Below, piece after piece: positions 30,566 through 41,726 of a DNA stretch of 64,000 nt. Location of the stretch: positions 434,001 through 498,000 of the forward strand of contig CAJFCJ010000006.1 of the NCBI GenBank assembly GCA_904063045.1, in the 5' to 3' direction. Numbering within the stretch: the stretch's first letter is position 1; the number at the start of each line of letters is the position of its first letter. The DNA comes from Dimorphilus gyrociliatus (taxonomy: Eukaryota; Animalia; Annelida). The notes beneath the pieces are model-generated. The model was not told the DNA's origin. It did no database searches and saw only the letters and a program-made list of their open reading frames with translations. Both the position numbers and the translations under genes were made by a program.

Positions 30566-32360
30566 TCATGCAGAACAATTATCTTCCTCCACTTTAACCA
30601 ATTGAATTTTTTGACCGGAGCCAGTTGATGTTAAGAAATTAGCCATTTGAGTGTGATATTCACTCGAGTCAATTTTAAGAATGTAAGGTATTATTGAATC
30701 TATCGAGACACTCCCTATTAATCCAGCAAAAAACAGTTCTTCAATGATTGAGGAGGAGAGAAGACGCAACGCAGGAAGGGCTAGAAGAAGATTCGCCTGT
30801 CTATCTATCCATATTTCAGAATAGGTTGACTGCAATAGCTCCCTCAATGAGTGCTGGAACGTTTTCTGCATTTGGCGTAGTTTGTTAGCTTCCGTTCCAT
30901 GAGCGTGATCTATCAATATTTTTTTATTTTAGGTTTGTTGACAATCTCATATTATATTTCTCATGAACTTACCCGGGCTGAAGATACATAAGGCTTTTAA
31001 ATGAGCGTATTCGGGAGCAGTAACAGCTAATCGCTTTAAATTCTCCATGATATCCCTTATCTGTTCAACAGTTTCTAGAACCAGGCTAGCCCTGTCTGCA
31101 ACTGATTTTTCTATTAAAAAAAAATATTTATACTAATTGCCAGTGTAACCAGAAGTTTTATTTACCCTTGGAGGAATTATTATTTATGTGATGGATAACG
31201 GCACTGAGGATCAAATTAAGGTTAATAACGTCTGCACATTGGGCCAGACCAAGAGCAAATATTTCTTTCCAACATTTTTTAACAGTTACAATTTGCATTC
31301 CTTCACTGAAAATAAAGAAGAAAAGTGTTTAGCTATATATATCGACTACAATTGATTTCTTTTATTTACTCTAGCATTTCAAAGGCAGATAACTTTTTGG
31401 TCCAGTGTAAAGTTAGGAATAAAAGTCTGGACGCAGTTTCGCAAATATAATGAACGTTTAGGTGAGAAGGCATTGGTGACGGTGTAGCTAACGAAAAGTC
31501 GTAATTAGCGTCAGTCATTAAGGCACCGTCTACATCTAGGCACTCTTCTTCCACGTTCAAGTCACGTGTTTGGTCCGGTTTACGATTTTTGTTCATAGAT
31601 ACCAATGAAGTAACGACATTTGCCAAAGTGCTTAAATCTGCATTGTTATGATCACTATTTGTCGTTTGACTAGAAGCTTGCTGCATGTCATTTAAAAGGA
31701 AAACACCACCATCTTCCGTCTGAACTAATCGTTCCGACAAATTGGACAAGAGACCTTCCGCCTTACCTTCCTGTGATGTTATTATTTATTAGGCTAATGA
31801 AGACGCTTTATGCAAAATTTAAAATACTACCGTATTTGGCAGATCCTTATTCAAAAATAGTCTATCTCCTATTGATTGACTGTTTGACATTTTCTCATCA
31901 ATATTGTAATTAGGCTTGCGTTCTTGTTGAACGGCTGAAAAAATTCATAAATTAGCAATTATAATCCTTCATAATGTTATCTTACATTCCGATCTCATTC
32001 CTGATGCGATGCATTTTTGTAAACGACAATATTGACACCTGTTTCTATAATGCTTTGTGATAGGACAATCCTTACTTCCTCTGCAAGCGTAGCCCAATTT
32101 TTTTCTTATAGAGCGTTTGAAAAATCCTTTGCAACCTTCGCAAGATAAAACTCCGTAATGTCTTCCCGATGCTCTATCTCCACAGACCACGCATTCTTCT
32201 AACTTGAATTTTGTATCAAGGGACCCTGGTTGTTGTTGCCCCTCTTCTCTTACTCGTACGATTCTTGCATTTGGAGATGTCTTTATTGATAGGAATTTAA
32301 TTTTTTTTTTTTATGAACACGCAGATGATATTTTACCTTCAAGCCCGTAGACGCAGCCAT
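30566..32360 (-). CDS. NR2C2: Nuclear receptor NR2C (TR2/TR4, Hr78 orthologue); multi-exon
   Basis: [46 protein letters not shown]; hinge [12 protein letters not shown]; [20 protein letters not shown] and [38 protein letters not shown] at 32360 (MAASTGLK|). Confidence 0.93.
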
Positions 32361-36689: not shown

Positions 36690-38366
36690 TTAGGCTTCAT
36701 GATACAATTTTGTTGCAATAATTTCTCCAGTTGAAAGTGTTTGAGTACTGCTGTCAGTTGTCTTTTTTACCGAACAAATTGATGAACTTGAATTTGAAGC
36801 TGTTTCAGTTGTTGGTGGTCGGGATGTATAGGAGCACAAATCCAATCTTAATTCGTGTAAATCGGTCAATGAGCCATTAGACATAGTTCCATCAAAATCA
36901 TCAAGATTTTTATCTGATGATGAATCTGACGGTATTATGCTATTTATCTCGTCTTGAAATGAAAAAGGAGCTGATTCTTCGAACATAGCAGAGTTAGGAA
37001 GTGAAGTTGGGGCAACTTCATCTTCTTTCCATACGTGAGTGGCTCTCCATTTGGCTCGAGATGTCTTAGGTGCAAGAACAGCATTGAACCACAAAGTCTC
37101 TCCAATTTTGAACTCTGTTTGCATATCCTCTATCGCTTCCACCATTATGCTTTTATCAAAAAATACGTGCTCATGTTTGCCAAGATCAACTATACCCCAT
37201 AATTTTGCTACATGATAAATAATTCCGTTGCAGGCTGTCAGCACATTTTGCGCTGAATGAACAAGGCCACTTTTTGGTTTACTTCCTGTAATAATTACAT
37301 TAAGCTTGGCACTTTTTAAAAGTGTTACGCTTTGATCAGCTCGATCATAGTTGAAAACCGAAGAAAAAGATTCGAAAAAACTCTCCAAATCCTCTTTATT
37401 GGAACCCATAACATTTTTCATACTTTCGGGCACGCTGGTTGTAAGGGGGAGTAAGCTTTGTATAGGGACTGTGGTACCCGAGAAACGTTTCTCCAGTATA
37501 TCTTTAAGGAACATGACTGATTTATATTCAGTTGCAGTCATAGAGACCGGTACGTTTGTTTTTCTCTTTTGAGATAAGTCTGTTTTGTCATTAAGGGATT
37601 TAGTTCGTTTTATATTGGAGCGTGAGTTCAACTTTGAATGCCCATTGCTCAAATCCAAATTCCTAGCTGGTACCGCTGGGGTTGACAAAGAAGCGATGTC
37701 ATCTTTAAGAGCAACAAGCTCTCCTTGAACCTCGAAGATATGAGGATGTTTCAGTAACCATTTTCTGAAATCTAATTGCGGACCAACGATACCCCTAATT
37801 TCAGCATTTGCCTGACTTAAATGTCCAGCTAATGATTTTATATTGATCCATTTCTCTTCCTTCTTTGCTAGCCATGACTGAAAGTAATTTACAGCTAGCA
37901 TCTCAAGAGAAACGTCAGGCACAAGGCTTGCTCCAGCTCCTGGAACAACGTTTGAACCGGCTCTCGAACATGAGACGCCGTCATCCAAACTGGATTGAGT
38001 AGAAGGAGATGATGCCTCAAATAGAGATACAACATTTCCCTTAATAGTGAAAAGTGACGGATATTTTTCTAGAAAGCTCTTTAAACCTAGAAAACAAAAT
38101 AATGATGAATCTAAACACATATACTATAGATGGCGCTAATCAGCAATTATACCGGCTTCGTTTCCACCACAGGCAACTCGCATTTCTGCTGTAAAACTCT
38201 GTAAAATTGTGTATATTGTGTTGGTAGCTAGTATTATAATTTAAAATAACTGTACCCTGGAGTTAAATCGACCAGCGAGCTGCGAAATATTCAAGCTTCC
38301 ATTGCTGTTCATAAGTACTTCAAGAAAATAAAGCATCGCTTTATGACCTGCTTCCTCGGTTGACAT
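36690..38366 (-). CDS. Egalitarian-like protein: three winged-helix (LOTUS-like) repeats + OB-fold-like segment + C-terminal TQT motif, no exonuclease domain; 3 coding exons
   Basis: MSTEEAGHKAMLYFLEVL..SQLAGRFNSR|SFTAEMRVACGGNEA|GLKSFLEKYPSLFTIKGNVVSL resembles the Egl N-terminus. Repeats FRKWLLKHPHIFEVQG and LESFFESFSSVF; GIIYHVAKLWGIVDLG; ends DSSTQTLSTGEIIATKLYHEA. Confidence 0.75.
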
Positions 38367-39566: not shown

Positions 39567-41726
39567 ATGGTTTTAGAGACCGCTCATGCGGTTCTGAGAC
39601 TACTGGGCTTTTGCTTCTTGGATTGGATATTTTTTATGCTCATTGACAATGCGGTTAAATTTAGTCTCCGGTATGTTCAAACATGTTGTTTTGCACAATT
39701 TCACTCGTATCATTTCTCTAGGAAAAATGTTTTTAGTCGAGAAGTTATTTGGGCTTCAGAATCAGTTGTGTTTGTAACTGTTGCATATAACTTGCAATAT
39801 TCTCACACATTTATGAGCCATACCCCATATCTTTTATATATTGCTGCTCTCATAGAATTTGGTATCACCTTATACTCTTCTAGGTTTTATGCTAGGTGAG
39901 ATATATTCTAAGTTTCATCCATTTTTAAGCTTATTGAATCTTAATTATCACTTTTAGAAATTTGTTATCTTTTATTGGAAATCGTTGGGAAGAATACGAA
40001 CAACACGAAGAAAGTAGAGAAAATCAACAGCGCTTATTTGAAGCAACAAGACATACTCAAACACTCAATCAGACATCAACAATTCAACGTTCAATAAGTT
40101 GTGCTGAAGTACCATTGGTGAACCAACAAAAATCTCAATATAGCTATTCACCAAAGACAAATTTTACAATGCAATCAGGATTTGATTTTTCAGTTCGTCG
40201 ACCTATTCAACAAAGTGAGCCATCTTTTCTTCCAGTAAGGAATCTACAAGAAAGTAATTTTCCACCTCCTGGCATATGTAATTCAGGCAACATGTGCTTC
40301 CTAAATAGCATTGTGCAAGTACTTGCACATACTCCTAAATTAGTTGAGAACTTAAGCCGAACTAACGACTCTGGATCAAACTTTTTGAAATCATTTAAGG
40401 ATGCATGCTTTCAATTGAGATATAACAGAAATGCTAAGAGTTATGTTGAGCTCAATCAGTTGAAAAACTTTATTCGGTGTAAGGACCCAAGCAAAGAATT
40501 TTTAAACTCAGATTCAATCCAACAAGAACAGCATGATGCCAGTGAACTTTTTCTCTGGCTTTTAGACTCTTTACATACTGATTTACTTTCAACTGACAAT
40601 ACACGTAAGCTTTTAATTCATTTGTATGATAATACTATTTTCAACTTATTCAGTTAATGGAGCTCTCTGTGGAAGACAACCTCAGAATTCTTTGGAGGCT
40701 TTAAAGTTTATTTATGGTGACATGACGGTGAAGGACATGGAGGAAGTTAGAGATACAAGTTACACAGAAATAGGCAAGTCAAGGAATATTGAGTCGGATG
40801 CATTTGTCGAAGCTGTTCAAAGATTATCTGACATTGAGTGGTTAGCTTACAAATCGAAGAACTGTACAGCAATTGACGAGCTATTTACGGGGCAGCAGTT
40901 ATTTATTTCCCAATGTGCCAAATGTTATAAGCCTTCAGTGAAGGTTGTATTCATTTGATTTTACTTCCTCAAAGTAACAACATTAACTTTACAGGTTCAA
41001 CCATTTAGGGTTTTAATGTTACCAGTCAGTGAATGCCAAATAAATCACATTAGCGGAGTTCTTCATTTGAATGACTGTTTTCAAAAGTTTGCGGCAAGCG
41101 AAAGCGTTCAAGATGCAGTTTCATGCAAATCATGCTTGAACACTACGCTCAACGGTGCAGATTTGATGGGAACATCAACACCAGTTTATCGGCGTAGACT
41201 ACCGACTGATGCATCGCCTATACTATCTTGGAATGACGAGAGAGTGCCAGCAGAAGAAGGTACAACTCCCTTTAAAACTTCTACACCGGTTAGAGGACTG
41301 TCATCATCAGACTATTTTTTAAGAGCCTATTTGCGACAACTCCCACCTTGCATTGCCATTCAGCTCCTACGGTATCGTTGTACAGAAGAACATATATGCA
41401 GAAAAATTGATACACCGATTAATATACCACTAAGGAATTTGAATTTAACAAAGCTACTTATTGGAAACTGCACAATTTCACCTAAAGTTGAAACAGTTTT
41501 TCCAAGTGCTATTGACTTATTATATGATTTGTATGCAGTTTGTGTTCATTTTGGTTCAAATTGCAGCAGTGGACACTATGTCACTTATGCTTTAGGTCCA
41601 GATGAACTGTGGTATAAATTTGATGATGACAAAGTGACTCGTATTACTGGAATGGACTATGAATTAACCAAGCGACAAATAAAGGAAAATGTTTATTTAC
41701 TTTTCTACAAACGCCGTATTTGTTGA
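39567..41726 (+). CDS. Ubiquitin-specific protease (USP2/8/21-like catalytic domain) with a hydrophobic multi-TM N-terminus; 5 exons
   Basis: Cys box GICNSGNMCFLNSIVQ, QHDASELFLWLLDSLH, His box YDLYAVCVHFGSNCSSGHYVTY..WYKFDD. The upstream hydrophobic ORF (39477-39899) splices in frame through intron 39896-39957 (FYAR|NLLSF). Confidence 0.88.

Follow-up and report, generated by a model that had tools for sequence, protein, structure and literature searches.

Introduction

The closest described relatives of the gene studied here are Drosophila Egalitarian (Egl), C. elegans EGAL-1 and the Egalitarian-like (Egal-like) proteins of planarians. The gene lies in a 64,000-nucleotide stretch of the genome of the annelid Dimorphilus gyrociliatus (contig CAJFCJ010000006.1, positions 434,001 to 498,000), referred to below as the window; all positions are those of the window. 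We conclude that it is very probably the Dimorphilus orthologue of the spiralian Egal-like family and thus the counterpart of Drosophila Egl and C. elegans EGAL-1.

The domains of Egl are LOTUS-like winged helices, as in the LOTUS/OST-HTH proteins Oskar, TDRD5/7 and MARF1. ED1 binds BicD CC3 and, via helix 2 (His31 and Cys35), the lower RNA helix. The upper RNA helix is bound by ED2 from the partner chain, through base contacts of Gly124, Ser127 and Gln128. ExoHD-XAD closes the RNA pocket, and ED3 was unseen in the structure (PMC13186709). Cys35 is also the site of egl4e (C35Y). Dlc dimerises Egl, and egl2pt (S965K/S969R) abolishes both Dlc binding and Egl dimerisation; the allele is rescued by a leucine zipper (10.1101/550277).

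In planarians, dd_8302 was named 'egalitarian-like-1' (egal-1) in Development in 2025. The planarian Egal-like proteins have an N-terminal three-module domain in common with Egl and a C-terminal dynein-light-chain motif, and the exonuclease active site is absent. A central region of 67-71 aa is conserved among molluscs, annelids and brachiopods, with more than 50% identity among spiralians. The fold of this region was left unnamed, and the text uses none of the terms 'cold shock', 'OB-fold' or 'barrel' (PMC12579938).

Gene structure and domain organization

Two open reading frames (ORFs) on the minus strand, 36690..38120 (476 codons) and 38241..38366 (41 codons), each matched Pfam PF23713 'Egalitarian winged helix domain'. 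Splice combinations were tested using a local script, and a three-exon coding sequence (CDS) with canonical GT-AG introns was obtained on the minus strand at 36690-38366, which is exactly the span given by an earlier, sequence-only reading of this DNA. The exon-joined translation was identical (100%) to a database protein of D. gyrociliatus, DgyrCDS4267 (P0001, 517 aa).

The domain organization was examined by Pfam and by an AlphaFold2 (AF2) model built from an alignment of 19 family members. PF23713 WH_Egal matched P0001 in 3 stretches (E=3.2e-51), the best at residues 8-74. The predicted local distance difference test score (pLDDT) exceeded 90 at residues 8-75, 111-180 and 233-308, and residues 78-108, 184-229 and 416-497 were disordered in the model. 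The top Foldseek matches of the whole model in the PDB were the Egl chains of 9rvy, 9rw3 and 9rw7 (E ~1e-11), which are the 2026 Egl-BicD-RNA cryo-electron microscopy entries. The three Egl-type winged helices of the sequence-only reading were therefore confirmed by these matches, and its serine/threonine (S/T)-rich linker corresponds to residues 416-497 (pLDDT <50). Its two further domain statements, an OB-fold-like segment and the absence of the exonuclease domain, also held, as described below. The winged helices are unlike those of LOTUS/OST-HTH proteins in that no OST-HTH Pfam match was found at E<=0.1-1 and the Tudor or helicase-binding context is lacking.

ED1 to ED3 of P0001 aligned with a scorpion Egl at 28% identity over 290 aa (E=3e-28). 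ED1 aligned to Egl 7-77 and was the best conserved part, with ~37% identity to Egl ED1 by a hand count on the alignment. The protein shares with Drosophila Egl and C. elegans EGAL-1 (structures 9RVY-9RWB) ED1-ED3, the G-H-x-S-Q of ED2 and, at the C-terminus, the Dlc block with both egl2pt positions. It differs from them by an OB barrel where Egl has ExoHD and XAD, by Ser/Gly for His31/Cys35 in ED1, and by a longer ED1-ED2 linker (~31-35 residues in Dimorphilus, ~20 in Egl and ~290 in flukes).

Linker lengths varied across the family. In the fluke proteins P0125, P0126 and P0127 (~1100-1200 aa), the ED1-ED2 and ED2-ED3 linkers were ~170-335 residues, and in non-trematode members they were ~20-35 residues (ED1-ED2) and ~50-80 residues (ED2-ED3). 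ED1 was scarcely detectable in the Schistosoma orthologue. A close relative (P0002, 433 aa, 89% identical, Logan assembly), presumably from another Dimorphilus or Dinophilus sample, begins after ED1; either the gene call may be truncated or the sequence may represent an isoform that lacks the BicD-binding domain.

The family and its phylogeny

A word-based search retrieved ~190 relatives of ~550-650 aa with 34-48% identity over the full length. They came from annelids (Paralvinella, Ridgeia, Owenia), molluscs, nemerteans, the brachiopod Lingula and flatworms (Macrostomum), and carried database names such as 'Egal-1 winged helix domain-containing protein' and 'egalitarian protein homolog'. The 19 aligned members were co-linear, with 80 invariant columns; the Lingula, Owenia and Macrostomum proteins in this alignment are also included in Table S3 of PMC12579938. 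P0001 has the features by which that study recognised the spiralian family, namely the three modules, the central region, the C-terminal motif and a placement within its own phylum. The sequence is co-linear with Schmidtea mediterranea egal-1/2/3 and has the same architecture. Compared with these and other members, the Dimorphilus protein is shorter, lacks a mid-linker block, and has TQT where most have CQT.

The sequence-only reading had called the gene an Egalitarian paralogue. This label hinges on the existence of a full-length egl, and longer proteins are hidden from a word-based search. Therefore, we searched 1.84 billion representatives with a profile, obtained 483 hits and examined the best 150. 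Typing of all retrieved proteins by local hidden Markov models (HMMs) separated two clean architectures, ED1-ED2-ED3-OB-(mid block)-CT (OB-type) and ED1-ED2-(ED3)-EXO-CT (EXO-type). The named OB-type proteins were from spiralians, including Schistosoma, Calicophoron and Seison, and from Priapulus. The named EXO-type proteins were from a scorpion, pseudoscorpion, spider, mite, centipede, millipede, copepod, beetle, wasp, stick insect and tardigrade. Thus, the exonuclease-less OB architecture is the standard form across Spiralia (annelids, molluscs, nemerteans, a brachiopod, flatworms and Seison).

In a maximum-likelihood tree of ED1 and ED2, which is unrooted, the OB-type and EXO-type proteins were split on one branch (100/99). 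Within each type the tree tracked species relationships, and Dimorphilus nested with Ridgeia, Paralvinella and Owenia, the annelid forks having values of 93-97.

These data bear on the possibility that the gene is a true paralogue beside a full-length, exonuclease-bearing egl, acting as a second minimal adaptor or as a dominant-negative competitor for BicD/LC8. The relatives seen were the best 150 of the 483 profile hits, and an OB-type relative occurs in Priapulus, inside Ecdysozoa. C. elegans has both EGAL-1 and LIN-66, the latter combining a cold-shock domain (CSD) with Egal-like winged helices, so both types may be old. However, none of the ~15 named EXO-type proteins retrieved was spiralian, no second Dimorphilus protein was found among the 120 best word-search hits, and within each type the tree agrees with the species relationships. 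Planarians likewise were found to have only proteins of the OB type, in three paralogues (egal-1/2/3) regarded as sharing their ancestral gene with egl (PMC12579938); against these three copies, one was seen in Dimorphilus. We consider a paralogue of this kind distinctly improbable.

Three observations nevertheless weigh against simple orthology of the OB-type and EXO-type proteins. First, a two-clade unrooted tree fits ancient paralogy with reciprocal loss as well as it fits orthology. Second, Priapulus is an ecdysozoan, and its OB-type protein indicates that this design is not confined to Spiralia. Third, molluscs have a separate gene with an Egl-like ExoHD. In Mytilus galloprovincialis P0375 (451 aa; also P0377 and P0381), the exonuclease domain is 41% identical to scorpion Egl ExoHD (E=1e-44), and P0375 carries neither the Egl winged helices nor the C-terminal LC8 block. 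This stand-alone ExoHD may represent the 'missing' module, encoded by a gene of its own, or the origin of an ecdysozoan fusion. Together, the Priapulus and mollusc proteins keep ancient paralogy with reciprocal loss under consideration. Both the stand-alone mollusc ExoHD gene and the priapulid relative with several OB barrels are new in this analysis.

The Priapulus caudatus proteins P0190 and P0276 (934/987 aa) combine three ED-like winged helices with three spiralian-type OB barrels and have SQTVSTGD in the C-terminal block. A homologue search with the Priapulus protein as the query retrieved only itself. Two to four OB barrels each were found in the relatives P0170, P0188 and P0228. By eye, echinoderm 'exosome component 10-like' proteins (Apostichopus japonicus P0388, 474 aa; a Lytechinus entry is in Table S3 of PMC12579938) seem to have an N-terminal barrel-like segment, a winged helix and an Egl-like exonuclease domain. 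The 'GLLDLGRH' stretch of the barrel-like segment resembles WGIIDLGKHEH; hhalign of the family or OB profile with this sea-cucumber protein aligned only a 22-residue stretch around 'GLLDLGRH', at a weak probability of 3.6-24%.

Taken together, the gene is an ordinary member of a known spiralian family, and neither a new paralogue nor a new component. The sequence-only reading recognised its domains and its relation to Egl correctly. The term 'paralogue' is not supported, since the same architecture is present throughout Spiralia, Dimorphilus falls inside the annelids, and the 120 best hits contain no second Dimorphilus protein. Nor is the component 'undescribed', as had been supposed, because the family was already reported together with an RNA interference (RNAi) phenotype of planarian egal-1 (PMC12579938). 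For the suggested 'dominant-negative modulator' we found no evidence.

RNA-contacting residues of ED1 and ED2

We compared the residues that contact RNA in Egl with those of the family. In ED2, G140, S143 and Q144 aligned with Egl Gly124, Ser127 and Gln128 and were invariant in the family. Around these residues, 150/173 OB-type proteins had the motif LAGHLSQ, and 40/44 EXO-type proteins had LLGHRSQ. The base-contacting G-H-x-S-Q of ED2 is thus common to Egl and the OB-type family at the level of the alignment, which is new in this analysis.

ED1 behaved differently. S28 was found at the position of Egl His31 and G32 at that of Cys35. The motif was ISQLAGRFG in OB-type proteins and [LI]HDLSC[QL]FG in 38/38 EXO-type proteins. 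The H...C pair was present in all 38 of the EXO-type and in 0 OB-type proteins, and Ser/Gly was present in every OB-type protein; the ED1 reading residues therefore co-vary with the exchange of OB and Exo domains. This apparent switch from His31/Cys35 to Ser/Gly is also new in this analysis.

A predicted OB barrel at the place of the exonuclease

Residues 316-406 were modelled by AF2 as a five-stranded beta barrel with pLDDT >90, also when modelled alone. On the whole model, the Foldseek matches after the Egl chains were the DBC1 S1-like domain (8ez6; template-modelling (TM) score 0.76) and the YB-1 CSD (TM 0.70). The barrel alone was compared by VIA-align with 48,161 PDB representatives. Forty-eight of the 50 best matches were OB domains of the S1/CSD type and the other two were superantigens (Z 8.9-6.3); the matches included PNPase S1, Rrp4, bS1, NusA, aIF2-alpha, Lin28 and Unr. 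The OB domain was 53-70% identical to those of 18 relatives, with 31 invariant columns in 19 sequences.

By sequence, the barrel (P0001:310-412) had no significant Pfam match, including the canonical CSD PF00313 and S1 PF00575, and a PDB sequence-profile search with it gave nothing significant. The best Pfam matches to the barrel among the relatives were DUF7930 (E=0.0086) and S1-like (E=0.022). The likeness to S1/CSD domains is therefore structural, and the class assignment rests on the predicted structure. With this qualification, the S1/CSD-type OB fold predicted for the spiralian central region is new in this analysis. The nearest predicted-structure neighbour of the OB domain in the ESM Atlas belonged to an unannotated arthropod cluster (328 aa; TM 0.72, root-mean-square deviation 2.0 over 88 residues).

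A 3'-5' exonuclease domain was not detected in P0001, by either a PF01612 match or a phmmer match to an Egl ExoHD query, and tblastn found no ExoHD in the whole window. Extra exons adding the exonuclease were rejected on the basis of the negative tblastn result and of the two protein ends, which coincide with the conserved ends of the family and so leave no space for such exons.

We also considered whether the gene is an annotation artefact or a decaying, truncated egl whose exonuclease exons were lost in the compact Dimorphilus genome. At 517 aa, P0001 is the shortest full-length family member, in keeping with that compact genome. Its linker lacks the 'DAAPSGAGVVPVWNF ... SMVAERYYM' block that is found in most other members (alignment columns ~690-775); this mid-linker block seems to have been lost in Dimorphilus, a loss that is new in this analysis. 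However, the reading frame is intact and the splice sites are canonical, conservation extends to both termini and to each of the four folded domains, and the exonuclease-less architecture was present in every spiralian relative examined. The chance that the gene is such a remnant is very nearly negligible, and a pseudogene was rejected because of the intact frame.

C-terminal dynein-light-chain motif

The C-terminal motif TQTLSTGEIIATKLYHE is present in P0001 with its invariant Q, T, T, A and T and with a match to the CT HMM. The TQT motif proper, D497-I508, is DSSTQTLSTGEI, 12 residues encoded at 36720-36755. The sequence-only reading located this motif correctly but placed it at 36738-36755, which is too short and spans DSSTQT only. 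In the AF2 model, residues 498-515 form a hairpin of moderate confidence.

Q501, T502, T505, A510 and T511 were invariant in the 19 family members. By phmmer, residues 492-515 of P0001 (440-463 of the exon-3 ORF query) aligned with Egl 957-980, so that T500-Q501-T502-L503-S504 correspond to Egl S965-Q966-T967-L968-S969. The block was identical to that of scorpion Egl at 10/16 positions, and an HMM of the spiralian block recovered the C-termini of arthropod Egl fragments (E 1e-4 to 1e-8). The invariant residues, the alignment with Egl and the HMM recovery indicate that this is a conserved homologous site and no chance TQT. The C-terminal block is thus homologous to the Dlc site of Egl, and we infer LC8 binding from this homology.

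Proposed mechanism and its main rival

A role as an RNA-dynein adaptor is plausible from the sequence. In the mechanism that we propose, LC8 would bind the TQT strand and the protein would dimerise, as Egl does with Dlc. ED1 would dock onto BicD, with the C-terminal coiled coil as the contact site, and RNA minor grooves would be read by helix 2 in both ED1 and ED2, with the G-H-x-S-Q of ED2 kept and Ser/Gly for His/Cys in ED1. The OB barrel would take over the extra RNA contacts made by ExoHD-XAD in Egl, and these would probably involve single-stranded or loop RNA. Such a protein would act as an adaptor that links RNA to dynein-driven transport along microtubules. Binding of RNA, BicD and LC8 is in each case carried over from homologous proteins, and we advance this transport mechanism tentatively, at slightly short of even chances. 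The family assignment and the RNA-dynein adaptor explanation, taken as a whole, are in our estimate reasonably likely.

The main rival to a transport adaptor is a cytoplasmic RNA regulator of the LIN-66 or cold-shock kind, which would act on translation, stability or granules and in which LC8 would serve as a dimerisation hub only, with no BicD-dynein transport. LIN-66 resembles the Dimorphilus protein in that Egal-related winged helices occur together with a CSD-type barrel. The Dimorphilus OB domain belongs to the S1/CSD class, and a nematode 'Lin-66-like winged helix' cluster carrying PF26288 and PF23713 lies near it in the ESM Atlas (TM 0.63-0.64). Precomputed annotation places PF26288 WHD_lin-66 on several members of the family, P0001 not among them. 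The CSD of LIN-66 is required both for heterochronic timing and for the control of translation together with eIF3g, and LC8 is chiefly a dimeriser even for Egl (10.1101/550277). However, bacterial S1 domains match the OB domain equally well, so that the link to LIN-66 is at the fold level only. The order of the domains also differs, as the Dimorphilus barrel follows three winged helices, whereas the CSD of LIN-66 (reported at residues 101-171, isoform C) opens the structured region (101-376). LIN-66 reportedly has no homologues outside nematodes. In addition, no part of the protein is better conserved than ED1, the domain through which Egl binds BicD, and microtubule depolymerisation copies the planarian egal-1 phenotype, since egal-1 RNAi and microtubule poisons both give ectopic posterior notum expression (PMC12579938). 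We regard such a regulator as somewhat unlikely.

Several points also weigh against the transport adaptor itself, in addition to the phylogenetic observations given above. ED1 has Ser28/Gly32 in place of the base-reading His31/Cys35 of Egl. Deletion of XAD severely cuts RNA binding by Egl, and point mutations at the RNA interface of ExoHD impair it (PMC13186709); the OB barrel is no obvious geometric substitute for ExoHD-XAD. The ED1-ED2 linker is longer, and the argument that a short linker enforces trans pairing, as in Egl, may therefore not apply. Most family members have CQT rather than TQT, and every step of the mechanism is drawn by analogy with homologues.

Possible implications for RNA transport in Spiralia

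According to a 2012 review, Egl-based mRNA transport is likely limited to arthropods and nematodes (PMC3361156). The spiralian Egal-like family, represented here by an annelid with a very compact genome, shows that part of the adaptor is common to protostomes, namely ED1-ED3, the base-reading residues of ED2 and the LC8 site. The other half of the RNA pocket appears to have been exchanged, with an OB barrel in one lineage and an exonuclease fold in the other.

In spiralian embryos, many mRNAs are segregated on centrosomes in a microtubule-dependent manner, and a study of Crepidula mentions neither dynein, BicD or Egl nor any other adaptor (10.64898/2026.10.05.756875). The Egal-like family is an obvious candidate adaptor for this segregation. 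In its fullest form, the idea would be that Egal-like proteins are genuine BicD/LC8-dependent RNA-dynein adaptors in which an S1/CSD barrel replaces ExoHD-XAD and the ED1 residues are switched in step (Ser/Gly with OB, His/Cys with Exo), that they are the missing adaptor for centrosomal mRNA segregation in spiral cleavage, and that LIN-66 is a rearranged OB-type relative. This complete version is unlikely, and we offer it as speculation.

Features of the locus

The coordinates of the gene and of its domains and motifs are summarized in Table 1.

Table 1 Features of the Dimorphilus Egal-like gene in the window.
Feature	Position	Strand	Description
Exon 1	38256..38366	-	Codons 1-37; start ATG 38366-38364; first half of ED1
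Intron 1	38199-38255	-	57 nt, GT-AG
Exon 2	38153..38198	-	46 nt; codons 38-52 and first base of codon 53
Intron 2	38087-38152	-	66 nt, GT-AG
Exon 3	36690..38086	-	Remaining CDS; stop TAA 36690-36692
ED1, first Egl-type winged helix	38019..38345	-	Residues 8-75; both introns inside; Pfam, pLDDT >90
ED1 helix-2 motif ISQLAGRFN	38262-38288	-	
ED2, second winged helix	37704..37913	-	Residues 111-180; alignments, pLDDT >90
Invariant AGHLSQ of ED2	37812-37829	-	Residues 139-144
ED3, third winged helix	37320..37547	-	Residues 233-308; third WH_Egal stretch; pLDDT >90; aligns to scorpion Egl ED3
Predicted S1/cold-shock-type OB barrel	37026..37298	-	Residues 316-406; 'central region' of spiralian Egal-like proteins
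Disordered S/T-rich linker	36753..36998	-	Residues 416-497; pLDDT <50
C-terminal conserved block DSSTQTLSTGEIIATKLYHE	36696..36755	-	Residues 497-516; putative LC8/Dlc-binding strand

The flanking genes are seemingly unrelated. A UCH-type deubiquitinase (PF00443, E=2.7e-22) is located at 39962-41726 on the plus strand. On the minus strand, 30566-31749 holds exons that encode the ligand-binding domain of a nuclear hormone receptor (PF00104).

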